Positions 18,412 through 62,635 of a DNA stretch of 64,000 nucleotides are shown one piece after another. The notes under the pieces are model-generated. The model was not told the origin of the DNA, did not search any database, and saw nothing but the letters and a program-made list of their open reading frames with translations. The stretch spans positions 55,180,001 to 55,244,000 of the forward strand of contig OZ076420.1 in NCBI GenBank assembly GCA_964187785.1, read 5' to 3'. The position numbers were made by a program, and so were the translations under genes. How positions within the stretch are numbered: position 1 is the stretch's first letter; each line of letters opens with the position of its first letter. The DNA is from Amphiscolops sp. MND2022. Its lineage: Eukaryota.

Positions 18412-18885
18412 CACACGACGGTTCATCACACAAATCCATCAGCGGATAGGTAATTAACAAGAATTCAAGTGATTAACACCAATTTATAATAGCGCCATGA
18501 TGGTTTATTGAGTGATGATCAGGTTATTCCATCATGGCGGTATGCCTCAGTAAGGCATTTGGCCACGAGTGATACTAATTACTAATTAGTAACACCTCAA
18601 TTTAAGGCTGACTCAAATTAACTTAAGCTGACTCAAGTTGATCTACTAGTAATTGACCTAATCTAATATCTCCTTGTCAACTCGATTGTTCAGTTCACTT
18701 CTCTCTCCAATCTTCTTGCTTTGCATTTCGACCTTACAAACTTTAGAAACAAACTTGCATTTCTAGCTTAAAACTTGGAATTTTCTGAAACTTCTAACTA
18801 CTAGAGTTAGTTTTTACTTTTTAGTAAAATTTGACGTCTTTCTTTCCCTATTTGATTTAATCTACTAGAGTAATCTACTATTAGT
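18412..18885 (+). promoter_or_regulatory. Shared upstream module P, copy 1
   Basis: High identity to ~46905-47415 and ~59410-60146; ends in TTGACGTC...CCTATTTGATTTAATCTACTAGAGTAATCTACTATT just before a coding exon. Promoter role is inferred. Confidence 0.65.
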
Positions 18886-18899
18886 AATTTATCAATCCA

Positions 18900-21214
18900 T
18901 TGGCGGTAAACCCAAATTCCAGAACGCAGTTTTCCAAAATTTTCAAATGTGGCGACCTGGTGCAATGCTTCGAGGAGGAATGTGGACTTTGGCGATCTGC
19001 ATACGTTAAAGAGTTCATCGGCACACACAAGGTAATAGATTTGTGTCAGTTGTGAAAGTTTTTGCTTAATGGTAGATTTTAATGGTTTTTTTGCTTAGTC
19101 CGACTAAGCATTCATTCAGCGTGTTTTTCCTAAAAACAGCAAAATAAGTGAAATTAGTGAAAATAAGTGAAAAATTTTCCGGTCTTTAATCATTAGATTT
19201 GATTGGATGATCATTGGATGCGTGATTATCATGTACGCAAGAATATAAAGTTTAGACCAGGGATTTCAAAGATTCACGCAAAATCATTTCTAAAAATTAC
19301 GCTAAAAATCACCCAAAAAAACTTCTCGCTTAAATTCACGCTTAAATCACGGAAAAATCAGTTCAATACATCATTTATTTGATGGTATAAATTACAATTT
19401 TGATGCATTTCAGCATAAAAATCGTTTGAATAAAAAATACCACACAACATCGCATAGGGTAGATCTAAAATTCTCACACTGTGACTGGAAATCACTTTCA
19501 AAGTGAAAAGCAATCAAAGTGTGTAAGTTAGTGCTAACTTTGACTGTTTTCCACTCTGAAGCATTCGTCATTTCAAATGACGAATGCTTCAGAGTGGAAA
19601 ACAGTCAAAGTTAGCACTAACTTACACACTTTCATTGGTTTTCACTTTGAAAGTTAATTCCAGTCAAAATGAGGACAAGAGGAGTCAATTATTCGTAGAC
19701 ATCGCCTCGTGTTGGTTTAGATGGATGTTATTCGCTTGTCCTGAGGAGTCCTGGTAACTTACTTGTAAAGTAAAACACTTAATTTACCGTAACTAAAGTT
19801 TAAAATTAGGATTTTTCTGACTTTTGTGAGACTTTAGGCTGTGTTGGACATTTTCTGTTCAATGGAGTCCTGGAGCCCCCTTTCCAAATCATCATGATAG
19901 GATTCTTTTTAGGCCAATGTGAAATGGCTGAACTACACCAGCAAGTACGCAGCGGGAGTGATAGAAGCAGCGCCCAAGTTTCGTGAACACCCAGAAAAAT
20001 GGCCCATTCGATCGAATGAAACAAATGCCCCAGGATATGCTAGTAGTCGTAGGGTCGAATATCTCCTCAGTCTCGAAGTTCTGGGCTATATGAAGGAAAA
20101 ACGGGTCAGAAATGACAAAGTTCATTACAGTTGTCGGCAATCTTTGGACAACGAAGGCCCGACCGAACCCGAAGTCGTCAAAGCCTATGTGATCAAAAAC
20201 GATCCTTTTTTGAAAGAAATGCTGGTGTCACCGACGGTAGTGCCACTCAGGGATGGAGAATTTATCGACGATCAGATTGAAAAAATCGAGGTCACAAAAA
20301 TTTCGTATTTCCAGCTGCGGCCTGAAAACTACAAAAAGTCTTCAAGTTTTAGAAAAAAGCGATCATTGACTTTCGTGGACCCTCCGTCTGACACAGACGA
20401 ACTGGAAAGTGCCACTGGTGATTCACTGGCAGAAGATTGTTCCATAAAGTCACCGAGGGTTCCTAAAAGTCAGAACGAGTGCTCCGAGTCGAATTGTCAT
20501 AATACTAAGAGAAAACCACTGGCAAAGATCAGAGTCATCAAGGCACTGAATGGGGGACCATGTGATCCATTTAAAAACAAACCCAATGCACGGACTGACC
20601 TAGTTTGTGTCCCAGTTGCTACTGGAGTGGTAACCAGAGGTGACACCGTGACAATACTGGGGACGACATGGAAGGTGAATGGACTGTATTGGCACGACAC
20701 AAAAGCATTCATCGAAGTAGAAAAAGACGATGACATCTTGTTCAAGTCTACAGTTCCCCTCAATTATGTGCAGAAAGAAACTGAAGTCTTATCCAACAAT
20801 AGCCCTTGCATGCCTCTCTACGAAGAGTATTCGCTAGTCTACTGGGCTTACTCAAACCTCAAGCATCTTTTGATGCATTCCTTTAATGACAAGAGCAGGA
20901 TTAAGGACATCAAAAGAGACTTGGTCCCGTGTACCCCCGCAACCTTACATGCTTTTGGCATTGAAGAAGGCCCAGTAACTTTCAGCATCAAGGAAGAAGG
21001 TCCCTTTTCCACGGCGACATGGGATCACGTGCTGGGAGATCAATGGGATAAAGTGGCTGACGGCACAGCTGTTATCATGACCCTCAGGTTCAAGCAAGAT
21101 AAAAGCTGTGCACTCAACTTCAATACGAGTATCTTTGTTCACGTGACCCTTGTCTCAAACGTTAACTTCAAAACAATGCAAGGGTACCGACTGCACGTCA
21201 AAGAGCACTGTTGA
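18900..21214 (+). CDS. Two-exon gene (18900-19031, 19913-21214; ~477 aa) with N-terminal Tudor/chromo-barrel-like domain; start codon reads TTG
   Basis: Phase-0 AAG|GTAATA donor and TTTTTAG|GCC acceptor join FKCGDLVQCFEEECGLWRSAYVKEFIGTHK to ANVKWLNYTSKY, a Royal-family-like pattern; exon 2 is the 431-aa ORF. Confidence 0.62.
19482..19666. repeat. 185-bp palindrome (92-bp arms, 1-nt centre C19574) inside the intron
   Basis: GTCATTT-C-AAATGAC centre; inner part perfect, a few outer mismatches; arm sequence also occurs unpaired at ~42345-42410, ~55325-55390 and ~58260-58330. Confidence 0.9.
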
Positions 21215-37199: not shown

Positions 37200-39050
37200 C
37201 TATTCGGGCATGACAGCCTGAGCAGCATTATTATTACTTCCAACAGTAATGGAATTCGAACAATCCGTTAGACATCATCGAAAAACTTCCGAGTCGTCAC
37301 GGCAGTGTAGTCATACGGTATGAGTGACTTTGCTCAAAAAGACTTTGTCAAAAACCTCGTTGCTTTTTAAAGAAAAGCCTTAATCAACTTGAAAGCATTT
37401 TACTTCAAACCGAAGTCCGAATAGTGAACGAAACAAAGGAAATGATGAATATTTAAATTTACTAAAATTAGCAATAGTTCGTTGAACCAATAAAAATTTT
37501 AAAAGATAAACCCCAAGGAAAAGTTTTCAAAGTCAGAGTTCACTGGCCGGAAGAATTGACAAATGATCAGCCTGAGATGAAGGGTCAGTGCCAGTGGTTG
37601 AAGACTCTTCGGAGTGGGTTTCAAGTTGGGGGTCCGATTGGGTGGTGGATTGCCACTGGCTGCACAGGGGTCAGTCACTGACATGACGGTCTTTGTTGTC
37701 CACGTCATCGCACACTGATACTGACATTGGCACTTGTCTCGATGCCATTATCCAGTTGATCGATCTGTCGTTATCGGTCTGGATGATTGTAGATTCGTCA
37801 TTAGGATGATTGTTATGAATAACAAACCCAGATGCCCTGCCAGGGCGTATTCGACAAGTTGTCGTCGTGTAGGACTTCAAACTCGTTATCCACATTCAAC
37901 CTCGACAGTGAATCTAAAAGAAAGCTAAGCGAATATTTAAATTGAAAATTGTAGGATTTTCAATGACGAAATAAACTCTTTTCCAGGAAAAACTTTTACT
38001 TTTACAAACAACATCGCTTTAATTTTGACTTGCATTTGCTTCTCTCCTTGGATTTAAAGTGGTGGAAAAAGAACAATATTTTCTGTAAGACAAAAATGTT
38101 TGATAGCGCTCTTGCTACTGGTCTTGTCACACCAGTACCCAGGGCCGCGACGAGGACACACGCTATCTGGGCCCCAAAAAACGGTTTTTTGGATTTTGCA
38201 TTTTGTTAGATTTTTCATTTTGGATTTTTTCGTTTTTTAGCAAGTGGATTGAGGGCATCACAACCATCCAAGCCAACACGAGGCGAAGCCTACGAACCAC
38301 TGGCTACAGATGGTTAAGATGAACTTGGACCGACACTTCTCATTTTTTTGGATTTCGCATTTTTTAGTTTTTTTGTTCATCAAAGTTTTTTTAGCAAGTG
38401 GAACGAGGATATCAGAACCATCCAAGTCAACACGAGGCCAAGCCTACGAACTATTGACTACAGATGATTCAGATGAACTTGGACCGACTCTTTTTTCAAT
38501 TTTTCTAAGTTCTAATCTAATCTAATGTATTATAATCTAATCTAAGGTAATCTAGTGTAATCTAATCTAAATTTAAGCAGATTCATTAAAAACCAAGATG
38601 GGTTTTGTATGTTCTCATTATTACAAAAGTTTTCAAAAAGTTTGTAGGTTAGAAAAGATACTTTGCATGCCATGCAGCAACCCGAAAGTTTTGCTGCTAC
38701 TCGAGAGTTGTCATGCATCTGCCTTTTGTCGACCCATTTAACTTTTCAATATTTTTTGAATTTTTCTAATTGGAGCTGTCTGAGCCCCATTTTTCGGTTT
38801 TTTTGGGTTTTTTTGTGAGCCTAACAAGAGAAAAACATCCATCTAATACAACACGAGGCGAAGCCTACGAATTATTGACTAGAGAAAATGAAGTTGCTCT
38901 TGCACAAACTCTTTTTTGATGTTTTTGGTGGGTTTCTCAACCCATTTCGTTTTTTTTTGTTTTTTTTTGGTTTTTTGAGAGCCTAACAAGAGAAAAACAT
39001 TCATCTAAACCAACACGAGGCGAAGCCTACGAATTATTGACTAGAGAAAA
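37200..39050. repeat. ~1.9-kb inverted duplication of ~52750-54660
   Basis: Mirror ORFs 37499-37928 vs 53940-54369 and 38310-38525 vs 53343-53624; DNA matches as reverse complement. Confidence 0.9.
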
Positions 39051-40444: not shown

Positions 40445-42737
40445 TACGCTGATTGGCGGAAACGAGCAGTATTAATATTTATCGATCGCGGCCCCCTAAA
40501 TACTTGGAACGTTGGAATCTTTTGAGTCAATATTGTACTATATGGTTTATTGAGTGATGATCCCGTTATTCCATCATAGCGGTATGCCCCAGTAAGGCAT
40601 TTGGCCACGAGTGATACTAATTACTAATTAGTAACACCATATCTTAACAATTATCAAACAACGTCATTACTGCTTCCAAGTTGTTCAAATGATATTCCGA
40701 TTCAACAAACACTTCTAGTGACGACCAACACTTGCAGTCGTCATTACTGCTTCCAAGTTGTTCAAATGATATTCCGATTCAACAAACACTTCTAGTGACA
40801 ACCAACACTTGCAGTCGTCATTACTGCTTCCAAGTTGTTCAAATGATATTCCGTTTCAACAAACACTTCTAGTGACGACCAACACTTGAAGTCGTCATTA
40901 CTGCTTCCAAGTTGTTCAAATGATATTCCGTTTCAACAAACACTTCTAGTGACGACCAACACTTGCAGTCGTCATTACTGCTTCCAAGTTGTTCAAATGA
41001 TATTCCGTTTCAACAAACACTTTTAGTGACAACCAACACTTGCAGTCGTCATTACTGCTTCCAAGTTGTTCAAATGATATTCCGTTTAAACAAACACTTC
41101 TAGTGACGACCAACACTTGCAGTTGTCGTTACTGCTTTCCAGTTGTTCAAATGATATTCCGTTTCAACAAACACTTTTAGTGACGACCAACACTTGCAGT
41201 CGTCATTACTGCTTCCAAGTTGTTCAAATGATATTCGGTTTAAACAAACACTTCTGGTGACGACCAACACTTGCAGTTGTCATTACTGCTTCCAAGTTGT
41301 TCAATTGATGTTCCGTTTAAACAAACACTTCTAGTGACGACCAACACTTGCAGTCGTCATTACTGCTTCCAAGTTGTTCAAATGATATTCCAATTCAACA
41401 AACACTTCTAGTGACAACCAACACTTGCAGTTGTCATTACTGCTTCCAAGTTGTTCAAATGATATTCCGTTTCAACAAACACTTTTAGTGACTACCAACA
41501 CTTGCAGTTGTCATTACTGCTTCCAAGTTGTTCAAATGATATTCCGTTTCAACAAACACTTTTAGTGACGACCAACACTTGCAGTCGTCATTACTGCTTC
41601 CAAGTTGTTCAAATGATATTCCGTTCGAACAAACACTTCTAGTGACGACCAACACTTGCAGTCGTCATAACTGCTTCCAAGTTGTTCAAATGATATTCCG
41701 TTTAAACAAACACTTCTAGTGACGACCAACACTTGCAGTTGTCATTACTGCTTCCAAGTTGTTCAACTTACACACGCGATTCAAGGAACTCCTGGGAAAA
41801 CGATGAAAGAACGACAAAAATTTTACATCGTTTGCTTATCGTTCAGTGCTTCTAGTCGAATAATCGTGGTCGATGATGAAGCGATGTAAAAACGATGAAT
41901 TTTCAGAATATACATGAATCCTTACTCCATCTCTTACATCAGCTACACACGCGATTTAGTGAAATTCTGGAAAACGATAAAGGAACGATGAAAATTTTTA
42001 CATTATTCAGTGCTACTAGTCGAATAATCGTGCTCGATGATGAAGCGATGTAAAAACGATGAAAAATTTTTATCGTTAACAGATCCTCGAAGAAACCTTC
42101 TCCTTAAAAATTTGGAACGTTCAAGTTGCTAAAACGATAAATCTTTCATTCTAAGTCTAATTTGTGCCCCTATCCACTATACTTTATCTGTTTTTTATCG
42201 TTTGTGCCTCATGTCCTTGGATCCGGTCTTGATCTTTGGCCAAGGTTCAAGGGATCGTCTTGTGGATTCCATGCTAGACTTGTGTTTGCTGTTGACGCGG
42301 TGTAAAGTAATCGAGGAGGACATGCGGCATTGAGAAAATGATCAGTGGAAAACAGTCAAAGTTATCACTAACTTACACACTTTGATTGTTTTCCACTTTG
42401 AAGCATTCATCATTCTCTTGCAATCAACGCTGATTGGCGGAAACGAGCAGTATTAATATTTGTCGGTCGCTGCCCCCTAAATACTTGGAACGTTGGTAAA
42501 TCTTTTAAGTCAATATTGTGCTATATTCCCCCCATCCATCAGTTTCATATCCAAAACTTGAATATTGCACTCAAGGACGGGATTTATTCAAAAAGGGGAA
42601 ATCTGATGACTGTGTGTTCCAGTTGTACTTGCGCTGATTTTTCCAAGATGGTTAAATATGAATTGGCAACAAACTTACTCACAGTACGTTATTAGTCCTA
42701 CAATGGTATGGAAATGAAAAGTTATGAACACAAAAGA
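40445..42737. repeat. Inverted duplication of ~54962-58245, including the satellite and its flanks
   Basis: Flanks match as reverse complement; array length differs and the right copy has an extra block at ~57620-58030. Confidence 0.85.
40662..41765 (-). repeat. 77-bp tandem repeat array 2 (~14 units)
   Basis: Reverse complement of the array 1 unit; more point variants. Confidence 0.95.
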
Positions 42738-45214: not shown

Positions 45215-46619
45215 ATGATCGTTATGTTCTTAATACTGAGTCAAATCAAGGTAGAAAGGAATTAGGCGATGAAAAGGCGATGGATTCTCCAAGCAATACA
45301 GTCAATTTCCCATTTTCTCAGGAAGGTAGAAAGGTCGAAAGGAATTAAGCGATGAAAAGGCGATGGATTCTCCAAGCAATACAGTCAATTTCCCATTTTC
45401 TCAGTCTCTTCAGCAAAACGAAGATGTTTACTAAGTTCAAGCACCAATTTAGCGTATGATGTAAAAAGGATGAATTCCCAACTATATTCACCCAAATTCA
45501 GCACTAGTTGGGTTTGCGATGAAAAAAAGACAAATTTCCTCCCATCTTTGTTATTTCCAGCGCGTTACTGAGTTGACGATGAATTATCGATCCAGCACAA
45601 TCGCTCTTTTATTGATGAAATTAGGATGTACTTTCCCATTTTCTCAGTCTCTGTAGCAAAACTAAGTTCAAGCACCAATGTAGAGTATGATGTAAAAAGG
45701 ATGAATTCCCAAGTATATTCACCCAAATTCAGCACTAGTTGGGTTTCCTTGTTTAAACATTGTTTAAAGGAGTTTTGTGGAGACTAACCAACCCTGAGAT
45801 AGTCGATCTTCAGGTGCGGGCTAACCTACACTGAAAAATTTGACGTTAGTCTATTAGTCCGGGGACTGTTCAATTCGTCGAACATTCAATTCGTCGAACA
45901 TTCAATTCGTCGAACACGTATTAATTTAGTATGACGTAATGGAATGAATTGATTTCGGCCAATCAAAATCGAGCATTCAAAATTACGATAACGTAGTCAG
46001 ATATGTTCACATACCCCTAGTGCCCTAAATGCAGGAACGAAGCGACGTGCCATATGGCCATGCTTCAATGTTGCTAATTGGCGAAGGGAGCGAAGCGACC
46101 GAGCCATACAACAAATATGCTAATCGCTACAAAATATAACAAAATGAAATTAATCGCTGATATGGAATTCTTTCGACGCATTGAATAGCTTTTTATTTTT
46201 CGACAATTTGAATCATTCCATAACCATGATGGCACCATAACTATGATGGGCACCTATTAGTCCACTGGGTTAGTCGAGTTAGCCATGGACCAACAGCGCG
46301 CCAAAAAGGCAAATGGCAAAATGTTATTGAATAAAACTCCCCAATTCGCTATCATTTCACCAATATGATGGTCCTACTGATATTTGAACTATTTCAGTTG
46401 TTACGTCATTTGCGACTATTCCAATCCCCTACCTTGAGTTGGCCAAAAGACAACAATTATATATGCACACTGTTTCATATCCAAAACTTTAAGTGATCTT
46501 AAGTAATGCTGCTACCAGTGTTGATCGTTTAAATGATTATTAAACGCTGAACAAGCGTTTAAACGCTGATGAAAAAAATAAACACTATTTAAACGCTCGC
46601 CAAGAAACGATCCGCAGGC

Positions 46620-47415
46620 TCTTCAAGTGAGAAAATGAGATGCAGAAATGGGGCATCGGCTCAGGCCGTAAATGCAGTTGAACAAATTCGCTGATGAATT
46701 TGCGATAAGTTTTACAGATGAAGTACTACTTATAGTATTAAATACCTTTTTTTTCAAAATTAATCCGGTGATGGATTTACGATGAGTTTACGCTTGGCTC
46801 TGTCTAATGTCCGCTCATCCGATGAACTTGAACTGGTGTTAATTATCAACACTCGTGGCCAAATGCCTTACGTGAGGCCTGATAATAGTATAATGTTAAT
46901 AATCACACGACGGTTCATCACACAAATCCATCAGCGGATAGGTAATTAACAAGAATTCACGTGATTAACACCAATTTATAATAGCGCCATGATGGTTTAT
47001 TGAGTGACGATCAGGGTATTCCATCATGGCGGTATGCCTCAGTAAGGCATTTGGCCACGAGTGATAATAATTACTAATTAGTAACACCTCAACTTAAGGC
47101 TGACTCAAATTAACTTAAGCTGACTCAAGTTGATCTACTAGTAATTGACCTAATCTAATATCTCCTTGTCAACGCGATTGTTCACTTCTCTCTCCAATCT
47201 TCTTGCTTTGCATTTCGAACTTACAAACTTCAAATCTTCGTACCAAACTACAAACAATCTCCAATCTTTCTGCTTTGCATTTCGAACTTACAAACTTTAG
47301 AATCAAACTTGCATTTCTAGCTTAAAACTTGTAAACTACTGAAACTTCTGAAATTTCAAAGTTGACGTCATTCTTTCCCTATTTGATTTATTCTACTTGA
47401 GTAATCTACTATTTC
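46620..47415 (+). promoter_or_regulatory. Shared upstream module P, copy 2
   Basis: Matches 59140-60146 over ~0.8 kb; TGACGTCA at 47363-47370; ATG 75 nt downstream of the module end. Confidence 0.68.
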
Positions 47416-47488
47416 AAATAACTTACAAATTTAGAAAGTGTTTGGAAACTGCTCGTCAATTTGCTCTGCATTTCGTTTCCGTTTAACA

Positions 47489-50400
47489 ATGTTGTCTGAA
47501 CTTCAGAAACCCAAGATTGTATCTGACCACACGAGTTACGTGAAGCTTTCGTTCCTGAGCATCCTATTCCCTACTATTTTTCCTCTTGAAAGCAACGGAT
47601 GCTTAAACCCAAACGATCGGCGAAAAGTCAAGACGTTTCTGACCAAGCAATTTGCAGGTAAAATTTGTCAGTTCATAATCGGATGTTATGTTAATATTGA
47701 AACATCAACAAATAAAGACGTTTCTGATCAGGGCTTTTTAAAATAATATTGCAATATTTTTTTGGATCAAAATATTTCCAATAAATATATTGCAATAAAC
47801 ATTGTCAAAAAAATACATACATGTATATTGCAATATGCTGAATTTGTGGAGAGAAACTTTGGCAAATGTGGAGTGCAAAAAATGTGGAGTGCAAAAAAAT
47901 TTGAAAGCAAGGAAAATTTCATTAACTATTTTTCATTGAATATCGATTCGATATTTGTCTTGGTATTGCAAAATTCGGAATTTTGTTGCCGCGGCGTTTA
48001 CCTCCCTCAGGGCTAAAAATTGTAGGCTAAAATTTTCACTTTTTTCAATTTTACAATTTTTTTTCATTTTTTGCACTGAGGCTGATTGGAATGGTTCTAG
48101 GACATTACGCCCAAAGACATTACGCCCAAGGACATTACGCCCAAGGAAATTACGCCCAAACGGAAATTACGCTCAACGAAATTAGGCTATTCAAAAAGAG
48201 TAGCAGCGATTTTTTTCAGGTTATTATTTGAAAAGGTTAGCATGTTTGTTGTATAGCTCGCAACATGTTTGTTGACGATTACATTATCGTAATTTCCTTG
48301 TGCGTAATTTACATTTGGGCGTAATGTCCGCTTTGGGCGTATTGTCCTTGGGCGTAATGTCCGGACACCGATTGGAATACCAAGACAAAACGAGTATATA
48401 TTTCAAATTTTCAGTTGTTAACGAAAGTCGTCGATCTGTTAATAGGGCATTACATTTAGTAATTGCCAACAGTGTTACAAATTGAAAACTTTAGCTATAA
48501 TTTTGCGATACCATTATATGATTTGTAACTTACATGAAGAAAGTTGTTCAGGCTTGTAACATGATGTTCAGGCTTCTTTTGATTGCATCTTACTATGAGA
48601 GTGAACACTCTAACATTATCATGATCAAAATATGGTATAATGATCAATTGATCAGCGATTTTTCGGAAGATATCCGTCTAACATCTATAATATTTGATAA
48701 TCTTATATATTACTCATGTATCACTTTGATGTCAGACAGAGGTCATGGTCCCTTCCACCATGATTTTGTATTTCATTAGCCTAATACTGAGTGCACTTTG
48801 TTGCAGGGTCAAATGTGAAAATCGATGATGCGTATAAGCCCCATGGTGTGAAAGTAGAAAGATGTGCCCTATTGCGAGAAGACTTGTTTGACCTTTTTTT
48901 GATATCAGCTCCTCCAGTCCTGTTACCTTGGACGACTGAAAGAGTGGAATTTATTCGATGCTATTTTCCATCAATACATTTATCATCTATTGATGGTTTT
49001 GCTCCACTTCCGACTAATGATGAATCATCTTTGAGAGAAGTCTCCCAACTCCAAAAGCGATCTTGCAAGATCAACCCAACAGTGTTTTCAAACCTCACCA
49101 ACCAATCGAGTCCCACGGTGCTGTTCGACCTTGAGTCAACAAACAAAGGAAACAACTTGAACACTTTTGACAACCCACAGGGAAGTGTTATCAAGCCTAT
49201 CCAACCAATCAATGCCACATTATCAAACTTTACCAACCAATTGAGTTCGAATCCACCGAGTGACCACATGACATCATACCGACAACTAAAGCATTTATTT
49301 CAAGTTCATGGTGCTACTTCTGACAACAAAACCGACATTTGGATGAATTGTTTCAAGCTAATATCTGAATCCGATGAAGCCCTTCAACAATTTCTCTACT
49401 GTTTAAATGACTTTTTAGTCAGTCAAAAAACAGTGTCCAAGAGGAAAAATTCAATTGTGCATCGTATCCTTCACTTGTTTCTGCCAAACTTGTTCGGAAA
49501 CGATAGGGAAGACATCCAAGTGGAGGTGCAATGTCTCCTCACCTTGAGCAACCCACAGGATCTCATCGTTAAAATTCGCCAACTTATAAAATGTCCCTTC
49601 ATCAAGTCAACAATACTTCTATCGAGACTAGAACTTGAGATGATCAATTCCACGTTGAGCATGGATTTCCGATCAATCCTTGAGCCATCAAGAACGCCAA
49701 GTGGATTTCGTGTCAGCCTTGTGAAGTTCGTCAAGTTCGTTGCGTCCAATGTATACAGCAAGACTACCCTATCCGGGTTAAGAGTCGACATTTATGGAGA
49801 TGCAATGTCTCGAGGAAAACGGGATGTTGTTAGAATGGCTTTCCGAATCTTAGACAGTGGAATCCACTCAGAACAATCTTCGACCCATGTCTTCACGTTC
49901 GCTGTATTTGACGTGAGTTCAAATTGAATTTGACAATTAGAATTTGCCATCTGTCATCATAGATGTGTGATGCCATTGTGTGTTTAAAGAAGCCCCCTAA
50001 AAATATCATATTTTTTTATGATTCTAAACCAGAGTTGGCCCTTGGGATCTTTTCTGTTAATCCCCCCCACCAATTTAATTCCCCCCCCCAGTTACGCGGT
50101 CAAGAGAAATTATCACTGAAGTAATAGTAACAACCAATCAAATTGCAGTTTTTTATAGCTCTAACTGCGACTGAAACTCATCGCTGATAGTGGTGGGGAA
50201 TTAAAACTTCCGCGCTTACTGTGGCCCCCAGTGGTGGGGGGGATTAACGGAAAAGATCCCAAGGGCCAACTCTAAGGTTTAGAATCATAAAAAAAATAAT
50301 CACCCCGGGGGGTGAATTAACAGAAAAGATTCGGAGTAATGATTTCAGAAATCATGTTTTCTCTTTTTACACCAAATCTAGTTTTCAACGTTTTCAACAT

Positions 50401-52388
50401 CAATTTGAACGTTTTTAGGGACGTAAATTAGTACCATATCCGATATTACCCGTACATGGTTTTACTCGTACATGTATTACTCGTACTAGTAGGTAATAAG
50501 TCATACTCGTACATGGTTTTGCTTCATTGTTAACTCTTTTGTTGTGTTGGAACAGGGAAAAGGTGTTCGAATCAATCTGGAGTACAACCTGACAATGCCA
50601 GAGATCCTTGGAAGACATGGCTGGCTGTATAACGAAACGAAAGCCCTACATGATGAAGGAGCTATTCTGAGCTGCTCAGGTGATTCGCCATTCCAACTGA
50701 CAATGTTGAAGGAAGTCAGCAGTGACGTGTCATGTCATTCCAAAATGTGTCTGTATGTTCCTGACCCGATGTGTGTGTCCACCTTGGATAGAGCGGGTTC
50801 AAAGCAACAGACCCAAACAAACAAAAAAGGATTGGAAGCAAAGGGCGTCATCCTCCCATCGACAGTAGATTGTGTCACCGGTCGAAGGACAGAATTGAAC
50901 ATCGAAGTCAACGAGGAAATTCCAAAAGAGTCCCTTTTGTTTTTAAAATCAACGTTCAATACCTGCCCGGATGTTCTTCACATGATTGTTCGTTCGGTAG
51001 AGAGTGATCTCAAGTTACATGTTGACGCACTGCTATTATCGAAAGATGCAAATGCCATTTCAAGACTTGAGTGCAATATAACTGACCGAAATGTCAAGCC
51101 TCCGCGATTCAAATTTGAGTTTGTTGACAAGCTTTGCAAACCCGTTTCACTGAGCTTCAGAGACGCTGAGGTCATCTTATCTGACTGCACAAGGACGAGT
51201 GAATACGGACGGACGGACCAGCCACTCTTTGAAGGAGTCTACTCTAAGGAAACACCATACATTTATAAAACAGATCAAACGGGATCAACCACCCCTTACA
51301 ATGTTCTTATATCTTTAGTAGGCGACTTGGAAAAATCATTTTCGAAAGGGATCGGGCTTTCTGTTAGGACACTAGCAGACCTTCAATTTCAGTCCTTATA
51401 CCATTTACTGGAAATACTTCGGCAACGGGAACTATCTCAGGCTGACCTCCAGAGGTGTAAAAACCTATATGAAACGTACTACCAATGTACTGTGTGTCTC
51501 TTTGGAGATCGTGGTTTGACACCTTACAAACTCAAACTCGACATGTTGCTTAGAATTGTCGAAAAGTGTGAAATACTGCCCCCTTTCTTTTACATGACAG
51601 AAGGTACTGAAAAGAGTCACCATACGGCAAACAAAGACTATAACTCGAAAACAATGAGAGACGGTGGTAATGATGCTTGGAACATGTCCTCAAATTATTT
51701 AGACATTCAGTTTTCGTTTCGCAGGGCCATCACTTTATGTTCATCAAAGGCAGCAATGCTTCGTCGATATCGGCACGTGAATGAAAATGTCAAATCGTAC
51801 CTCGAGATATGTCGAGAGCCTATTCCAGAGCCTGTACTTGATAATCAAAGAACTGATGATATTTTCAGGTGCATCAATTTTGTTGTTCTGGGGTCTTATG
51901 GCCACATAAAAGAAACACAAAGCAGCATCGAAAAGAAGATCAGAGAAAATGGTGGCACGATTCTCAACAACACAGACATCGTGAGTAGAAGCAAGTTGAG
52001 TTTTTTAAGTCACCATTACTGTGTTCTACCTAATCGCAATGTCATCGATACCTTTATTGGAAGCCCACTGACCAAAGAAACAGCAACAACAAAGGCGTTT
52101 TTTCTCACGACACAGGGCAATTGGACCTACATAAGTGCATTTTTCATCCTGGCGTGTTTGAAGGAGAAGTCACTCGTGGACCCCAAAGATTATATGTTCA
52201 ATGTGGATGTATCCGCGAAGATTAAGTTCAGAAGAATTCGGCACAAGTCAATTGCCCCCCAATTGCAACGTCAATCACAGCCCATGACATCTGCCAGTGG
52301 CTCCATTACCTATCACACAGCGTTGCGGAAGTACAAGAATGCAATACAGAGAAATTTTTTGAAAAGGAAGATCAGTTGTGTCGATTGA
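47489..52388 (+). CDS. Three-exon gene (47489-47657, 48807-49912, 50556-52388; 1035 aa): Transib/RAG1-like DDE fold plus C-terminal BRCT
   Basis: Phase-compatible GT-AG junctions (GCAG|GTAAAA..TTGCAG|GG; GAC|GTGAGT..AACAG|GGA) give 3108 nt with no internal stop. Motifs RVDIYGDAM, SCSGDSPF..C, LTPY..MTEGTEKSHH; BRCT-like IFRCINFVVLG..IRENGG..SAFFILAC..DPKDY. Confidence 0.72.
48093..48369. mobile_element. MITE in intron 1, imperfect TIR GGT(T/G)..GGACATTACGCCCAA, 9-bp TSD GATTGGAAT
   Basis: TSD at 48084-48092 and 48370-48378. Confidence 0.85.
50045..50259. mobile_element. Second copy of the GGATCTTTTC MITE, in intron 2, opposite orientation, flanks inverted rather than duplicated
   Basis: Internal sequence is approximately the reverse complement of 45010-45214; inverted symmetry extends to ~50011/50295. 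Confidence 0.8.
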
Positions 52389-52539: not shown

Positions 52540-53768
52540 CCCATTGCGTGATGTGATGATTAAGGGATTGGGCTAGGTTGATCAGAACAAAAAAGAGTGG
52601 AATAAATGTATTTTCAGCATCTAAAACTAATAGTTCGTAGGCTTCGCCTCGTGTTGGTTTGGATGAGTGCGATACAATTGTTCCACTCAACAAAAAAATC
52701 AAAAAAGAGTTGATGGCTCACAAAAAACCAAAAAAAAAACAAAAAAAACGAATTGGGTTGAGAAACCCACCAAAAACATCAAAAAAGAGTTGATGCAAGA
52801 GCAACTTCATTTTCTCTAGTCAATAATTCGTAGGCTTCGCCTCGTGTTGTATTAGATGGATGTTTTTCTCTTGTTAGGCTCACAAAAAACCAAAAAAAAA
52901 CAAAAAACGAAATGGGTTTCTCAAGTTGAGAAACCCACCAAAAACATCAAAAAAGAGTTGGTGCAAGAGCAACTTCATTTTCTCTAGTCAATAATTCGTA
53001 GGCTTCGCCTCGTGTTGTATTAGATGGATGTTTTTCTCTTGTTAGGCTCACAAAAAAACCCAAAAAAAAAACGAAAAATGGGGCTTAGACAGCTCCAATT
53101 AGGAAACTTCAAAAAATATTGAAAAGTTAAATGGGTCGACAAAAGGCAGATGCATGACAACTCTCGAGTAGCAGCAAAACTTTCGGGTTGCTGCATGGCA
53201 TGCAAAGTATCTTTTCTAACCTACAAACTTTTTGAAAACTTTTGTAATAATGAGAACATACAAAACCCATCTTGGTTTTTAATGAATCTGCTTAAATTTA
53301 GATTAGATTACACTAGATTACCTTAGATTAGATTATAATACATTAGATTAGATTAGAACTTAGAAAAATTGAAAAAAGAGTCGGTCCAAGTTCATCTGAA
53401 TCATCTGTAGTCAATAGTTCGTAGGCTTCGCCTCGTGTTGATTTGGATGGTTCTGATATCCTCGTTCCACTTGCTAAAAAAACTTTGATGAACAAAAAAA
53501 CTAAAAAATGCGAAATCCAAAAAAATGAGAAGTGTCGGTCCAAGTTCATCTTAACCATCTGTAGCCAGTGGTTCGTAGGCTTCGCCTCGTGTTGGCTTGG
53601 ATGGTTGTGATGCCCTCGTTCCACTTGCTAAAAAACGAAAAAATCCAAAATGAAAAATCTAACAAAATGCAAAATCCAAAAAACCGTTTTTTGGGGCCCA
53701 GATAGCGTGTGTCCTCGTCGCGGCCCTGGGTACTGGTGTGACAAGACCAGTAGCAAGAGCGCTATCAA
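52540..53768 (-). repeat. Trailer module T, copy 2 (five hairpin units)
   Basis: AGGCTTCGCCT at 52639, 52832, 53000, 53423 and 53577. Confidence 0.85.
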
Positions 53769-54039
53769 ACATTTTTGTCTGACAGAAAATATTGTTCTTT
53801 TTCCACCACTTTAAATCCAAGGAGAGAAGCAAATGCAAGTCAAAATTAAAGCGATGTTGTTTGTAAAAGTAAAAGTTTTTCCTGGAAAAGAGTTTATTTC
53901 CTCATTGAAATTCCTACAATTTTCAATTTAAATATTCGCTTAGCTTTCTTTTAGATTCACTGTCGAGGTTGAATGTGGATAACGAGTTTGAAGTCCTACA
54001 CGACGACAACTTGTCGAATACGCCCTGGCAGGGCATCTG

Positions 54040-54350
54040 GATTTGTTATTCATAACAATCATCCTAATGACGAATCTACAATCATCCAGACCGATAACGA
54101 CAGATCGATCAACTGGATAATGGCATCGAGACAAGTGCCAATGTCAGTATCAGTGTGCGATGACGTGGACAACAAAGACCGTCATGTCAGTGACTGACCC
54201 CTGTGCAGCCAGTGGCAATCCACCACCCAATCGGACCCCCAACTTGAAACCCACTCCGAAGAGTCTTCAACCACTGGCACTGACCCTTCATCTCAGGCTG
54301 ATCATTTGTCAATTCTTCCGGCCAGTGAACTCTGATTTTGAAAACTGTTC
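54040..54350 (+). pseudogene. Fragment whose 3' half matches the C-terminus of the SET gene (mirror copy at ~37510-37830)
   Basis: QSDPQ..SSTTGTDPSSQADHLSILPASEL* vs QSDPQTHSSTTGTDPSSQTNYLSILPASEL*; 1-nt insertion ~54215. Confidence 0.75.
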
Positions 54351-55981
54351 CTTGGGGTTTATCTTTTAAAATTTTTTTTGGTTCAACGAACTATTGCTAA
54401 TTTTAGTAAATTTAAATATTCAACATTTCCTTTGTTTCGTTCACTATTCGGACTTCGGTTTGAAGTAAAATGCTTTCAAGTTCATTAAGGTTTTTCTTTA
54501 AAAAGCAACGAGGTTTTTGACAAGGTCTTTTTGACCAAAGTCACTCATACGAAGTTTTTCGACGAAGTCTCACTTATCCTACTGTTAAAATTCCATTACT
54601 GACGGTTAAGTTTGACTCAGAAATAGTTTTGAATAAAGTTGATGTCATGCCCGAATAGCATACACATTTCATTTACTACTTTCAAACTTACATACATTTC
54701 AAACTTACTACATGCTAATATGACTGAGACAAACAGTTGTCAAACACATTCATGTCCATTGGGATATCTTCAACCCCGCTTTCATGCCGATTGACATGAT
54801 GTATTTGACAACGACTTGTATAGTCGTCAGAAACTGCAAATAAAGCACAACGCAAGCTAACAAGCTAAAAACTCATGAAATATTTTTACAAGGAAAGTAC
54901 AACCGGCTTATCCAGTCGTCAATTTAATTAAAATCATCACAAACAGTTCATCTGCAACCATTCTTTTGTGTTCATAACTTTTCATTTCCATACCATTGTA
55001 GTATCATGTAGTACATTCAATCCTTGCTGTACTATCAGTAACCAACGTAGTAGTGAGTAAGTTTGTTGCCAATTCATATTTAACCAACTTGGAAAAATCA
55101 GCGCAAGTACGACTGGAACACACAGTCATCAGATTTCCCCTTTTTGAATAAATCCCGTCCTTGAGTGCAATATTCAAGTTTTGGATACGAAACTGATGGA
55201 TGGGGGGAATATAGCACAATATTGACTTTAAAGATTTACCAACGTTCCAAGTATTTAAGGGCAGCGACCGACAAATATTAATACCGCTCGTTTCCCCCAA
55301 TCAGCGTTGATTGCAAGAGAATGATGAATGCTTCAAAGTGGAAAACAATCAAAGTGTGTAAGTTAGTGATAACTTTGACTGTTTTCCACTGATCATTTTC
55401 TCAATGCCGCATGTCCTCCTCGATTACTTTACACCGCGTCAACAGCAAACACAAGTCTAGCATGGAATCCACAAGACGATCCCTTGAACCTTGGCCAAAG
55501 ATCAAGACCGGATCCAAGGACATGAGGCACAAACGATAAAAAACAGATAAAGTATAGTGGATAGGGGCACAAATTAGACTTAGAATGAAAGATTTATCGT
55601 TTTAGCAACTTGAACGTTCCAAATTTTTAAGGAGAAGGTTTCTTCGAGGATCTGTTAACGATAAAAATTTTTCATCGTTTTTACATCGCTTCATCATCGG
55701 GCACGATTATTCGACTAGTAGCACTGAATAATGTAAAAATTTTCATCGCTCCTTTATCGTTTTCCAGAATTTCACTAAATCGCGTGTGTAGCTGATGTAA
55801 GAGATGGAGTAAGGATTCATGTATATTCTGAAAATTCATCGTTTTTACATTGCTTCATTATCGACCACGATTATTCGACTAGAAGCACTGAACGATAAGC
55901 AAACGATGTAAAATTTTTGTCGTTCTTTCATCGTTTTCCCAGGAGTTCCTTGAATCGCGTGTGTAAGTGATGTAACTGAGA

Positions 55982-57617: not shown

Positions 57618-59139
57618 AGTTATTTTTAGAAACCTTTATTCATGTATTCATATCCCCTGAATTAAGAAAGTTCATCTTATTTTCATTACATAAAAGAGCA
57701 ATTGTGCTGGATTGGTCATTTGAATGTAAATACATCGATAATTTATCGTTAGATTGAAATCGTGCTAGAGTGAATAGTATAGGAAGTCCATCCCTTTTTC
57801 ATCGCTGTATCGAATTTGATGCTGACTTAGTAGAGAATATTGCTAAGTTCATCGTCATTTGAAATTGTGGTGGGGGTAATTAACAGAAAAGATCCAAAAA
57901 TTGTTTTGAAGAGATTCTGGGACTAAACCGAGTGACCTAAACCAACTTGAACCAACTTAAAGCACAACCAACACACATAATACAAAGAACTTATGAAATT
58001 ACCTCAATCCATATATATGTAAGTTCTAATTTGAGTCAGCCTTAAGTTGAGGTGTTACTAATTAGTAATTAGTATCACTCGTGGCCAAATGCCCTACTGG
58101 GGCATACCGCTATGATGGAATAACGGGATCATCACTCAATAAACCATATAGTACAATATTGACTTAAAAGATTTACCAACGTTCCAAGTATTTAGGGGGC
58201 AGCGACCGACAAATATTAATACTGCTCGTTTCCGCCAATCAGCGTTGATTGCAAGAGAATGATGAATGCTTCAAAGTGGAAAACAATCAAAGTGTGTAAG
58301 TTAGTGATAACTTTGACTGTTTTCCACTGATCATTTTCTCAATGCCGCATGTCCTCCTCGATTACTTTACACCGCGTCAACAGCAAACACAAGTCTATCA
58401 TCTTTAACTCAGTAACGCGCTGGAAATAACAAATATGGGAGGAAATTTATCTTTTTTTCATCGCAAACCCAACTGGTGCTGAATTTGGGTGAATATAGTT
58501 GGGAATTCTTCCTCTTGACATACGCTAAAAATCTACTAGTTTTTATCACCTATTCATCCGTGCAATAGAATAACGTTCGATTTTGACTGTATTGCTTGGA
58601 GAATCCATCGCCTTTTCATCGCTTAATGTGTTTTACCTTGATTTGACTCAGTATTAGTACAATAACGATCATTTTCATCATGTTTTCATCTCAGCAATGG
58701 AGAGAGGCTTTGAAAATTTTTAGAATATACTTCAATCCTTACTTCATCTCAGTTACATGTTGAACACGCGATCTATTAGAGAGATTTTAGCGATGTAAAA
58801 AGGATGAAAGAATCCAAAACTTGAATATTGCACTCAAGGACAGGACTAATTCGAAAAGGGGAAATCTGGTGACTGTGTGTTCCAGTCGTACTTGCGCTGA
58901 TATTTGGTCAAATATGAATTGGCAACAAACTTACTCACTACTACGTTGGTTACTAATAGTACAGCAAGGATTGGATGTACTACAGGATACTACAATGGTA
59001 TGGAAATGAAAAGTTGTGAACACAAAATAATGGTTGCAGCCACATTGTATCAATCAAGCCACCACAGTCACACTTTTTATAGATAGATTTAGGATAAACT
59101 TTCTCATTTTCTTGTGTGCGTGTGTTACAACGATGTATA

Positions 59140-60146
59140 AACGATCCTCTTCAAGTGAGAAAATGAGATGCATAAATGGGGCATCGGCTCAGGCCGTAAA
59201 TGCAGTTGAACAAATTCGCTGATGAATTTGCGATGAGTTTTACAGATGAAGTATTAAATACCCTTTTTCAAAATTAATCCGGTGATGGATTTACGATGAG
59301 CTTACGCTTGGCTCTGTCTAATGTCCGCTCATCCGATGAACTTGAATTGGTGTTAATTATCAACACTCGTGGCCGAATGCCTTAATAATAATTAACACCG
59401 TGTGTGGTGACCAATTCAAGTGATTAACACCAATTTATAATAGCGCCATGATGGTTTATTGAGTGACGATCAGGTTATTCCATCATGGCGGTATGCCTCA
59501 GTAAGGCATTTGGCCACGAGTGATACTAATTACTAATTAGTAACACCTCAACTTAAGGCTGACTCAAATTAACTTAAGCTGACTCAAGTTGATCTACTAG
59601 TAATTGACCTAATCCTAATATCTCCTTGTCAACTCGATTGTTCACTTCTCTCTCCAATCTTCTTGCTTTGCATTTCGAACTTACAAACTTCAAATCTTCG
59701 TACCAAACTACAAACAATCTCCAATCTTTCTGCTTTGCATTTCGAACTTACAAACTTTAGAAACAAACTTGCATTTCTAGCTTAAAACTTGTAAACTACT
59801 GAAACTTCTGAAATTTAGAAAGTTTGAAAAAAATTTTGAAACAATTGGAAACATTTGAAGTTTGAAAAATTTAAAAAGTCACAAAACGGTTTTCAAACTT
59901 GAAGGTTTTGAAAACTTGAAGTTGCATTTCTAACATAAAACTTCAAGTAAGTTACAAACTTTAGAAACAAACTTACAAATTTAGAGTTTGCAAAAAAAAT
60001 TGAAAGTGAAAAATTTAGAACCGTTCATTTCTAACGTGACGTTGCATTTCTAACTTAAAACATAAACTTCTGAAAGTTTTGAATCTTCTAAAATTTGACG
60101 TCTTTCTTGGCCTATTTGATTTAATCTACTAGAGTAATCTACTATT
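59140..60146 (+). promoter_or_regulatory. Shared upstream module P, copy 3 (with expanded AAACTT-type repeats ~59815-60090)
   Basis: Matches copies 1 and 2; TGACGTC at 60096-60102; ATG ~99 nt downstream. Confidence 0.68.
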
Positions 60147-60244
60147 AGCAAAGGTTTTTAACTCACAAACTTTTAAAAATTTTGATTTTTTTGGAAACTG
60201 CTCATCTTTAAGTTGCTTTTGCTCCAATTGAAAACCTTCTAACG

Positions 60245-62635
60245 ATGCCAACTTTTCAAGCGCATGCTTCGTTTACCGTGTCCAATGCTTCATCCTCCAA
60301 TTCCAATTACCAACAAATTCAAAATGTTATTAATAAATTGAACGTTGATGAAAACCCACAACCTCTACATGCACCAATCGCTGCCAGTGTCGCAGTGACG
60401 AGCCACGTGTTACCTCCACCGACCCACGAGTTGCCAACATACGCCGAATCCCAATCGTGCCGAAATTTGCTTGTCCTTCAACCTCCCGGGCCGTCTCCGA
60501 GGGTTGACCAAGTTGACCCGTACGACTTCGTCTCTTCCAGTCTCTCCAATTCCCTCACCCCACCGCCGCGACCATACCTCGACCCAATCCCAGCTCAACA
60601 AACTGACCGCCGCGGTCCACTGACTTCCACTCCTCTGCGCCCGTTGCCGTGTCAACCACATGCTCAACCGACGGACACCTCTCTTACCCCCGTCACACGC
60701 AGTCCCGAGGTGTTTTCGCCCATAGGCACCGGGACTACCGTGGCAAAGATTGACAGAGGCTTGTCGTTGAACGACGAGCAATCAAAAAATATGCAGAAGT
60801 GGGCAGATAGTCGCTCGTACATCGAACACTTGACCAAGGTTGATGCCACGCCTCCGAAAGAAGACTGTCTGCTTGTCTTCCAATGTCTAATCATAATGTG
60901 GTGTTACATTAACAGTTACCCGTCGCGACTCCTTAAGAGGTTCACTGTGTACGACTTTGTGAACATTGTCGACAAAAATAACGAAGACAAGGAATTCGTT
61001 GTCAGTGTACTTGATGGCAACAAGTACAAATATCGAACGGCTTTAAAATTCAACAAGTTTGAAAAACAAGTGATGACATTTTATTTCAAACGTATACGAC
61101 CACTATGGATCAGCGGTTTGAAGTTGTTGAACGATAGTTTTTCTACCTGCATTGATACTATTAGTAACAATAAAATACAAGAAATTACTCAAATTTTTTT
61201 CTACAATTCCAATGGAAACAAACAGCTGAATGTTGCAAGAATTTGTGAAAACTTTCAAGCTAAAATGACGGCGCCGCACAAAAAGTCTAAACCAAAAGCA
61301 TCACTGGATGACAAACTAGGCCCTAGTTCATCCAGTGCTCAAGTCCCGGATCCGATCAACAAAATTTCGAGTCAACAAACTCCTCTGGAAGTGGCTCTAG
61401 TGACATCGGATGTGTTGGAAAATAACGAAAACGTTGATCCTGAACCTAGAAGGAAGCGTTTGTCACATCACGAGCTGATGCTAATTTCCCCCATTTCGAA
61501 GAAACGCTTATTTTACTCAACTGACAACCAGAGCATGTCTGCTAGTTTCAATGCCGTGAAAAAATTCTTCCAAACGCCAAAGAATGTTGATGAGACTATT
61601 CCAACGCCTGCGGAGTGTTGCAACATTATCTGCAAAAACACCAACATTGATTCAAGTTTGGCCAAAACGCTCGGTGAAAGAGTCAATGACCACTTGCGGT
61701 ACAAACTAGTCAATTTGCGAGTTCAGAAATCGTTGAATTTTTTCACTGGAGCAATTCGGCCATCCACAGACGATATAGCGAAGTTTGCACGAAATCGTGG
61801 TTCGTCTGATGTTGCACGAATTGTCGACAAAACGTTCGCATCATGGAAGCCAGCTCCCGCCAGTGACACAAGAAGGTCCACCCGCAACACGCCCCTTGAA
61901 GAACCTGCAGCTGCTCTACCCTCCAGAGGAGTGAACATCTTCTTCTGCAAATCGACGTCTACCATCTGCAACACTCCGAAGGTATCAGAGTACCTCAGCA
62001 GTCAACAATGGCCCTTTCTCCAGGTTTGCGAGAGAATCGTTTTTAGTAACGGTACTTTTGGAAGAGGCGTTGTTACGACAGCTAAGATCTGTGAGTCAGA
62101 AATAGTTTGCGACTATCACACAGATGTAATCGTTACCCAGAGTGTCCTTTTTCAACGGGAAAACACGCAATACATGATGGACTGTGGAGATATTGTTTTT
62201 GACGCCACCTTGGACACGTGCGCCTGTCACCCTGGACGGAGGACGTTCGGACGTCTCCTGAATTACAGACCATCTAACCATCCAGAGTGCAATGTCCGGG
62301 CCAGACGAGTCTCGATCAATGGCAAGCATGTAATTTTGTTCATCGCAAAAAGACCAATCGAAATATTGGAAGAACTCTGTTTCGACTATAACGACCCGAA
62401 ATGTAGAACGGAATTCGGACCTGCAGCTTACGTGCGTTCCGCCGGCGTCACGCCTCAAACGTCAACGGTTTCCCGTTCTGTATTCTCTCGTTTTGAAACT
62501 CCTGAGTCTTTGACCCCTGAGCAGCCAGTGCAATCCACTGCCCAATCGGACCCCCAAACCCACTCTTCAACCACTGGCACTGACCCTTCATCTCAGACTA
62601 ATTATTTGTCAATTCTTCCGGCCAGTGAACTTTGA
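60245..62635 (+). CDS. 796-aa intronless protein: Pro-rich N-terminus, degenerate tyrosine-recombinase-like segment, SETD8/PR-Set7-like SET domain
   Basis: SET at ~62009-62395: FGRGVVTT..EIVCDYH..YMM..DAT..GRLLNY..NV..ILFIAKRPI..EELCFDY. Segment ~60870-61270 (RFTVYDF..FVVSV..YFKRIRP..FFYNSNG) resembles the first half of a YR fold. Confidence 0.8.
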   Translation: MPTFQAHASFTVSNASSSNSNYQQIQNVINKLNVDENPQPLHAPIAASVAVTSHVLPPPTHELPTYAESQSCRNLLVLQPPGPSPRVDQVDPYDFVSSSLSNSLTPPPRPYLDPIPAQQTDRRGPLTSTPLRPLPCQPHAQPTDTSLTPVTRSPEVFSPIGTGTTVAKIDRGLSLNDEQSKNMQKWADSRSYIEHLTKVDATPPKEDCLLVFQCLIIMWCYINSYPSRLLKRFTVYDFVNIVDKNNEDKEFVVSVLDGNKYKYRTALKFNKFEKQVMTFYFKRIRPLWISGLKLLNDSFSTCIDTISNNKIQEITQIFFYNSNGNKQLNVARICENFQAKMTAPHKKSKPKASLDDKLGPSSSSAQVPDPINKISSQQTPLEVALVTSDVLENNENVDPEPRRKRLSHHELMLISPISKKRLFYSTDNQSMSASFNAVKKFFQTPKNVDETIPTPAECCNIICKNTNIDSSLAKTLGERVNDHLRYKLVNLRVQKSLNFFTGAIRPSTDDIAKFARNRGSSDVARIVDKTFASWKPAPASDTRRSTRNTPLEEPAAALPSRGVNIFFCKSTSTICNTPKVSEYLSSQQWPFLQVCERIVFSNGTFGRGVVTTAKICESEIVCDYHTDVIVTQSVLFQRENTQYMMDCGDIVFDATLDTCACHPGRRTFGRLLNYRPSNHPECNVRARRVSINGKHVILFIAKRPIEILEELCFDYNDPKCRTEFGPAAYVRSAGVTPQTSTVSRSVFSRFETPESLTPEQPVQSTAQSDPQTHSSTTGTDPSSQTNYLSILPASEL

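Follow-up and report, generated by a model that had tools for sequence, protein, structure and literature searches.

Why does one block of upstream sequence stand, always in the same orientation, ahead of three genes whose proteins do not resemble each other? This question is raised by a stretch of 64,000 nucleotides (nt), hereafter the window, of contig OZ076420.1 from the assembly of Amphiscolops sp. MND2022 (GCA_964187785.1). The block, here called P, measures 0.5–1.1 kb and is present in the window in three copies (n = 3) of direct orientation, which precede the genes numbered here 1, 2, and 3 (Table 1). In the original prediction made from this DNA, it was described as a portable promoter and 5′ untranslated region reused for different cargo. 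The analysis presented here leads to a related reading, which is held with moderate confidence: P is probably an element-internal promoter/5′-leader cassette of a three-gene transposon-like element, and was spread among the genes of that element by recombination.

The Upstream Block and Its Terminal Motif

Comparison of the window with itself by BLASTN confirmed that the block is shared. Positions 18411–18882 and 46903–47413 are 83% identical when indels are counted, 18462–18743 and 59413–59690 are 97% identical, and 46619–47363 and 59147–59824 are 87% identical, while an ungapped P core of 182 nt shows 97–99% identity among all three copies. A MAFFT alignment divides P into modules: a left part, which only copies 2 and 3 show clearly, is followed by a foldback, the core (~180 nt), a stretch of short degenerate repeats (34–67 nt) whose length varies by copy, with ~270 nt extra in copy 3, and a terminal motif of 52 nt. 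The left edge of P is not sharp, and the boundary of homology varies between copies. At the other end, the terminal 52 nt form a conserved island behind a segment that is variable in both length and sequence.

The terminal motif is laid out as TTGACGTC, 8 nt, and then CCTATTTGATTTA.TCTACT.GAGTAATCTACTATT. The window has exactly three occurrences of it, all on the plus strand, versus none in 100 shuffles. Within these last 52 nt, a TGACGTC that resembles a cAMP response element (CRE) sits ~10 nt upstream of an AT-rich, TATA-like box, and CTACTATT is positioned ~25–30 nt beyond this box. The box itself reads TATTTGA, which is not a canonical TATA box. A CRE-like ending of all copies had been predicted, together with a perfect TGACGTCA in copy 2; both were found, and among the three copies the perfect form belongs to copy 2 alone.

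In every case, the homology among P copies ends ahead of the coding sequence. Copies 2 and 3 remain alignable for 45–60 nt past the terminal motif (47309–47457 versus 60042–60206, 77%), and this similarity stops ~30–40 nt short of the ATG. For comparison beyond the window, six sister loci (L001–L006) and four diverged copies (L007, L008, L010, and L011) were available, all from the ENA metagenome assembly ERZ25074608. The terminal motif was present six times in the sister loci, only ahead of gene 1 or gene 3 and in the same orientation, so that the placement of P just upstream of a coding start, with constant orientation, holds for 3/3 copies in the window and for 6/6 motif copies in the sister loci.

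The distances from motif to coding start had been given as ~18, ~75, and ~99 nt. Those of genes 2 and 3 stand, at 75 nt (ATG at 47489) and 98 nt (ATG at 60245), but that of gene 1 does not, as a start ~18 nt after the motif would fall at position 18900, which is a TTG and implausible as a eukaryotic start. The gene 1 frame is closed by a TAA at 18885–18887 and contains no ATG in the window. Codon 18924–18926 is ACG in the window; because three sister loci (L003, L004, and L005) and the diverged L008 have ATG at this place, the start of gene 1 is placed there, 41 nt after the motif. The conserved start codon is thus mutated in the window copy. Given the ACG, this copy of gene 1 is possibly not translated normally.

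Could P be a passive duplicated block without regulatory role, whose copies stay similar through gene conversion and lie beside gene starts because duplications took the 5′ ends of genes with them? The setting lends itself to such an explanation: the window is pieced together from duplicated and inverted blocks; pieces of P lie away from genes (two core fragments in the window, and an inverted left half of P at 20921–21457 of L005); and the left boundary varies, with L001 and copy 2 alike over 2 kb further upstream. However, duplications that carried gene 5′ ends would share coding sequence, and none is shared, the 3′ end of the homology lying 41–98 nt before a different coding sequence in 3/3 cases. 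Moreover, every copy that bears the terminal motif precedes a gene start, whereas the two core fragments in the window, which lack the motif, have no gene behind them, and it is the terminal 52 nt that are conserved behind a variable segment. A purely passive block is therefore considered unlikely.

Three Genes of One Multi-Copy Element

The proteins encoded by genes 1, 2, and 3 have 469, 1035, and 796 amino acids (aa), respectively. The first exons of genes 1 and 2 had been proposed from splicing logic only; in both genes, the exons join in phase through canonical GT–AG sites. The first-exon peptides of both genes are 74–77% identical in the diverged locus L007, and in L008 identity is 77% for gene 1 and 52% for gene 2. 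Because these peptides are conserved in both loci, the exons are taken to be real.

The original prediction regarded the three genes as unrelated. Their proteins are indeed dissimilar, but the genes constitute a conserved, linked trio that belongs to one multi-copy element. In an exact-sequence look-up, copies of the trio open reading frames (ORFs) that are at least 90% identical co-occurred on the same other contigs of ERZ25074608. The sister loci L001–L006 have 94–99% identity to the window across long stretches and differ by large deletions and rearrangements; for instance, L005 and L006 (~98–99% identical) are without window positions 29220–49843 and 36198–49266, respectively, deletions that took away P copy 2 and truncated gene 2 at its 5′ end by all of exon 1 and some of exon 2. 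L007 and L008 are more distant (65–78% nucleotide identity) and hold the trio within ~11 kb in the order gene 2 (−), gene 3 (−), gene 1 (+), versus genes 1, 2, and 3 all on the plus strand in the window. L010 and L011, which are of the L008 type, have a three-gene unit of ~10 kb in common with L008. The 90%-identity clusters for the diverged subfamilies contain 22, 42, and 28 distinct sequences, located on many contigs and in many cases truncated, a pattern that points to a dispersed and decaying repeat family. Overall, close copies are ~98% identical, identity between subfamilies is ~70%, and truncated copies number in the dozens.

The association also extends to other samples. On L009, a 10.5-kb Logan contig, an ORF of the SET type with homology to gene 3 (E 1e-20) lies beside a 1301-aa homolog of gene 2 (~33% identity) in divergent orientation, and a 473-aa ORF downstream aligned to the gene 1 family at its conserved motifs. 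On an ENA contig from a further sample, SET again adjoins a gene 2 homolog. Between subfamilies, the proportion of nonsynonymous differences (pN 0.18–0.30) contrasts with that of synonymous differences (pS 0.75–0.82, which is saturated), and within a subfamily dN/dS is 0.28. These values indicate that all three genes are under purifying selection and evolved as working coding sequences.

Gene 3 is a predicted SET-domain lysine methyltransferase of the SET8 type. Its SET domain matches PF00856 with an E-value of 3.4e-11 (43.9 bits versus a Pfam cut-off of 22.4), and its nearest PDB sequences are SETD8/KMT5A. The protein of gene 1 has no match in Pfam or among PDB sequences, its exon 1 peptide yields nothing in Pfam even at E-values up to 10, and its AlphaFold2 (AF2) model has a predicted local distance difference test score (pLDDT) of 35. 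Word-based homolog searches returned a small family only for gene 1, and for the SET ORF of gene 3 nothing other than itself. The idea that the three genes are diverged paralogs was rejected, the best E-value in pairwise BLASTP being 0.04 with a three-sequence database.

Gene 2 and the RAG1/Transib Fold

A HMMER search of 1.8 billion representatives identified 187 relatives of gene 2, the full-length ones of ~1000–1300 aa. The family forms ~190 clusters at 50% identity in public data and appears not to be annotated: in 10/10 cases looked up, the name of the relative said nothing beyond "hypothetical protein." The AF2 model of one full-length homolog, P0056, was made with a 32-sequence alignment and reached a pLDDT of 74.8, with residues ~230–960 mostly above 80; exon 3 of gene 2 in the window is homologous to this protein (E 3e-53). 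When the model was compared with the PDB by Foldseek, the best 47 matches were all RAG1, the RAG-like transposase BbRAGL of amphioxus, or HzTransib, with a best E-value of 2.4e-8 (probability 1.00) and target-normalised template modelling (TM) scores of 0.38–0.56 over ~650–790 alignment columns. The P element transposase did not appear before rank 48. In P0056 numbering, D330 is on a predicted strand, D533 directly follows a strand, and E749/E752 are at the beginning of a helix. No sequence in the family alignment departs from these residues, gene 2 of the window has them as well, and as candidate D-D-E residues they would fit a DDE transposase. In RAG1, the catalytic triad is D600/D708/E962.

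At the sequence level, Pfam yields for gene 2 nothing more than a weak BRCT_2 match at the C-terminus, and neither phmmer nor a profile search against PDB sequences retrieved RAG1 or Transib, the matches again being limited to a weak BRCT. The C(2)C and H(3–4)H motifs are common to CACTA, Mirage, Chapaev, Transib, and RAG1 (PMC12730594). These motifs of the CMCT clade (CACTA/EnSpm, Mirage, Chapaev, and Transib) are not conserved in the gene 2 family: between D533 and E749, neither a Cys pair nor H-x(3-4)-H is conserved in the 32-sequence alignment. The modelled fold suggests that gene 2 encodes a transposase with the RAG1/Transib fold; since both sequence similarity and the two motifs are lacking, it is not called a member of Transib. 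One member of the 90% cluster of P0044, which also contains a 655-aa homolog of gene 2, is a 48-aa protein of the bacterium Shimia gijangensis, and is possibly a contamination or a chance short match.

Distribution of P and Exchange Between Its Copies

The block had been called portable, and this term is not borne out by its distribution. In a look-up that did not show the window's own contig, small ORFs located within P were found on only five other contigs, of which three also bear trio ORFs at least 90% identical to those of the window. On contig 134730, a 55-aa ORF identical to that within P is accompanied by a full-length ORF for exon 3 of gene 2. The diverged copies L007, L008, L010, and L011 lack P, and in JGI metagenome contigs both the terminal motif and the P core gave 0 matches. 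P thus appears to be of low copy number and confined to the subfamily of the window. Its lack in the diverged subfamilies does not date it, because synonymous sites are saturated.

This distribution bears on the idea that P is an independent small mobile element, such as a miniature inverted-repeat transposable element (MITE), a short interspersed nuclear element (SINE), or a solo long terminal repeat (LTR), inserted upstream of the three genes and co-opted there. Transposable elements are generally known to supply promoters often, and the foldback of P, with its 32-nt inverted arms, is MITE-like. However, such an origin is very improbable for a block whose ORFs occur on five other contigs only, three of them with trio ORFs, which is missing from the JGI metagenomes, and which has neither terminal inverted repeats, nor LTR structure, nor a target-site duplication, nor a sharp left edge. 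Two specific candidates were also discarded. The window gave 0 matches both to Rfam (gathering thresholds) and in a tRNA scan, which rules out a known RNA gene or a tRNA-derived SINE, and when the window was compared with itself, P showed no resemblance to the Ty3/gypsy-type element (1–10664) of which it might have been a solo LTR.

The copies of P are related to each other in a reticulate manner. Copies 1 and 2 have in common a 50-nt segment that is missing from copy 3; a duplicated 40-nt unit, like the left module, is shared by copies 2 and 3; and several point variants unite copies 1 and 3. In addition, the P that precedes the SET gene in L001 and L002 is a hybrid, in which the left flank and the first ~150 nt are as in copy 2 and the remainder is as in copy 3. 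These relationships, together with the hybrid, show that P copies recombine, and that recombination inside P couples differing flanks to differing genes.

Repeats Behind the Genes

Genes 2 and 3 are also followed by a shared block, Q, whose units consist of a core, GTTCGTAGGCTTCGCCTCGTGTTG, and A-rich tails (Table 1). One Q unit lies in the intron of gene 1 (19683–19742), and an AATAAA is found near the start of the Q of gene 2. In L008, a tandem array with a unit of ~34 nt containing TGACATGGTCA stands after the stop of all three genes (arrays at 1–358, 3571–4123, and 10987–11405), and L011 has an array at 11541–11921. The two outer arrays of L008 are mutually inverted and bracket the unit like long terminal repeats; the third separates the SET gene from gene 2. 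Flanking sequences common to genes of the trio thus recur in this element family. The sequence common to L008 and L011 extends beyond the arrays. L010 has a second type of inverted array, with units of ~200–350 nt, on both sides. A C2H2-zinc-finger-like open frame just outside the gene-1-side array is shared by L008 (~11450–11840) and L011 (~250–660, minus strand), and could be either a fourth gene of the element or a neighbouring gene.

Such flanks raise the question of whether P and Q are the ends of separate mobile P…Q cassettes, one per gene and each moved or exchanged as a whole, in which case P would chiefly be a subterminal part of a transposon and less a promoter. P precedes and Q follows both gene 2 and gene 3, an inverted Q that is 98% identical lies at 37318–39091, the L008-type arrays are inverted after outward-facing gene ends in the manner of long terminal repeats, and the gene order differs between the window and L007/L008. 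However, P and Q are dissimilar, with no terminal inverted repeat seen between them, all full copies of P are direct, gene 1 has no Q behind it, target-site duplications were not found, and what distinguishes the sister loci is large deletions, not P…Q units cleanly present in some and missing from others. Separate cassettes are, in our judgment, quite improbable.

A Proposed Shared Cassette for Three Transcription Units

In the reading that is preferred here, the window would contain a rearranged and repeat-bloated copy of a three-gene, multi-copy DNA-transposon-like element, in which gene 2 would encode a RAG1/Transib-fold transposase, gene 3 a lysine methyltransferase with a SET domain, and gene 1 a further conserved protein. 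In the subfamily of the window, each gene would be its own transcription unit headed by P, which most likely gives a common promoter and 5′ leader. Transcription would begin at CTACTATT, with resulting leaders of ~40–100 nt, and the use of one cassette would let the three products be made together. Recombination or gene conversion, within and between elements, would have brought P to the three genes and would keep its core at 97–99% identity, and the same process would reshuffle which flanks neighbour which genes. What we infer from this arrangement is that P acts as a promoter, where transcription starts, that the three genes are co-regulated, and that the element is mobile.

Several points weigh against this proposal. 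The transposase call comes from the fold, with Pfam and PDB profile matches limited to a weak BRCT. The gene 1 start codon is ACG in the window. P ahead of gene 2 was observed directly in the window alone, and gene 2 is without P in L005 and L006. A shared 5′ block is missing from L007 and L008, and the matching positions of L007, L008, and L009 are without a CRE. Neither the exact ends of the element nor target-site duplications were found, the three L008-type copies included. The region is a mosaic of duplicated blocks (Q, a 77-nt satellite, and others), in which a repeated block is unremarkable. Finally, the assignment of CRE, TATA box, and initiator amounts to pattern recognition on three similar copies.

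A broader proposition can be advanced tentatively. The trio may represent an undescribed, superfamily-level lineage of eukaryotic DNA transposons, which has the RAG1/Transib fold without the zinc motifs and is always accompanied by SET and a third protein; the P cassette would have been acquired by recombination in one subfamily, and would now be a junction at which genes and flanks are reshuffled.

Comparison With Known Systems

Among known systems, the Transib/RAG1-like group (RAGL, ProtoRAG) is the closest to gene 2 in fold, as the family matches the RAG1 core, BbRAGL, and HzTransib and has an invariant candidate D…D…E at positions that fit an RNase H-like fold. A further likeness, drawn from general knowledge, concerns RAG1L/RAG2L, in which the transposase travels with partner genes, one of them chromatin-related; the PHD finger of RAG2 reads H3K4me3. 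The differences are substantial: gene 2 has no sequence-level match to this group, its proteins are larger (~1000–1300 aa) with a weak C-terminal BRCT match, and three genes are present here versus one or two. Elements of the Transib/RAG1-like group have terminal inverted repeats with CA…TG ends and target-site duplications of 2–5 bp; the L008-type copies share a ~10-kb unit bounded by inverted tandem arrays. In the literature covered, which did not include Repbase Reports and thus constitutes weak evidence, no Transib/RAG1-like element with SET or BRCT is described, nor any transposase of the RAG1/Transib fold that is linked to both a SET gene and a third conserved one.

For a SET gene alongside a transposase gene, the one precedent found is HarbingerS, a DNA transposon with its own SET-domain gene (cited in PMC12730594). 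HarbingerS differs in that its transposase belongs to another superfamily, Harbinger/PIF.

With regard to P itself, MuDR of maize may offer the closest analogy among transposons. Near-identical terminal inverted repeats of MuDR hold the promoters of mudrA and mudrB; in both systems, one repeat heads each gene of a multi-gene transposon and would coordinate expression. In contrast to P, whose copies are direct and internal, the MuDR repeats are inverted termini from which transcription converges. At a smaller scale, P resembles CRE-plus-TATA core promoters, in which TGACGTCA is found shortly upstream of a TATA box, as in cAMP-responsive genes. In P, TGACGTC precedes the AT-rich box by ~10 nt and coding starts lie ~70–130 nt past the box. 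P differs in that the full palindrome is limited to copy 2 and the box is non-canonical. A repeated regulatory block within a multi-gene mobile element is therefore a known arrangement; three direct, internal copies with a role as junction would be new.

Feature Coordinates and Neighbouring Sequences

Table 1. Positions of the genes and repeated blocks described in the text, numbered from the first nucleotide of the window.
Feature	Position	Strand	Description
P copy 1, short form	18411..18885	+	weak left-module similarity (to copies 2 and 3) back to ~18355
Terminal motif, P copy 1	18831..18882	+	CRE-like TTGACGTC, AT-rich TATA-like box, CTACTATT
Gene 1 exon 1	18924..19031	+	36 codons; GT donor at 19032
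Gene 1 exon 2	19913..21214	+	phase 0 join after AG at 19911–19912
Inverted Q copy	37318..39091	−	~98% identical
P-core fragment	40542..40647	+	without terminal motif or gene; abuts 77-nt satellite
P copy 2, long form	46570..47457	+	46620–47415 in the original prediction
Foldback in P copy 2	46840..47073		32-nt inverted arms, 94% complementary, 170 nt spacing
Terminal motif, P copy 2	47362..47413	+	perfect TGACGTCA inside
Gene 2 exon 1	47489..47657	+	
Gene 2 exon 2	48807..49912	+	first candidate catalytic Asp (DIYGD)
Gene 2 exon 3	50556..52388	+	second candidate Asp (CPD..H), candidate Glu (MTEGTEKSHH), weak BRCT match
Q after gene 2	52558..54550	+	starts 169 nt past stop; ~160–190-nt units
P-core fragment, inverted	58020..58147	−	without terminal motif or gene; ~400 nt from 77-nt satellite
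P copy 3, longest form	59135..60206	+	~270 nt extra short degenerate repeats
Foldback in P copy 3	59354–59532		same structure as in copy 2
Terminal motif, P copy 3	60095..60146	+	
Gene 3	60245..62635	+	single-exon ORF, 796 aa; C-terminal SET domain, closest to SETD8/KMT5A
Q after gene 3	62697..63504	+	starts 61 nt past stop; 95–97% identical to Q of gene 2

Other repeats are interspersed with these features. Between the gene units, a 77-nt satellite forms arrays at 21842–22304 (+), 40662–41766 (−), and 55982–57618 (+), with 6, 14, and 21 copies, respectively, and 95–98% matches; these arrays are present in the sister loci too. A repeat of ~210 nt with runs of G/C occurs twice in inverted orientation (45010–45214 versus 50045–50259, minus strand; 87%), once upstream of P copy 2 and once in intron 2 of gene 2, and is probably a small mobile element.

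At the start of the window, positions 1–10664 (−) hold the ORFs of a Ty3/gypsy-type LTR retrotransposon, with aspartic protease, reverse transcriptase, RNase H, and the zinc-binding and core domains of an integrase. This element has more than 1000 related proteins, nearly all from ENA metagenome data. Open frames of 94–333 aa are located on the minus strand at 23339–34391, in a region of strong GC and AT skew that is also represented on contig 768584 (L003 and L006); those tested at 23–34 kb had no match in Pfam or among PDB sequences. In L002 (contig ctg184133), a 525-aa ORF with a Kringle domain occupies positions 1–780 (−), ~9 kb upstream of the SET gene, and hints at an animal host.

Significance

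If the proposed role of P is correct, a cassette repeated ahead of each gene of a multi-gene transposon would clearly exemplify, in nature, how the copying of one regulatory block can coordinate expression. It would also act as a recombination junction; the hybrid P of L001 and L002 is an instance of such an exchange. The element itself is nonetheless a more interesting result than the P block. In the origin of V(D)J recombination, RAG1 and Transib have a central place, and a distant branch with the same fold and without the zinc motifs of the clade would widen the diversity known around that origin. A permanent partner that resembles a histone methyltransferase, together with a third protein and instead of a RAG2-like partner, would further suggest that such a transposase can be coupled to chromatin by another route.

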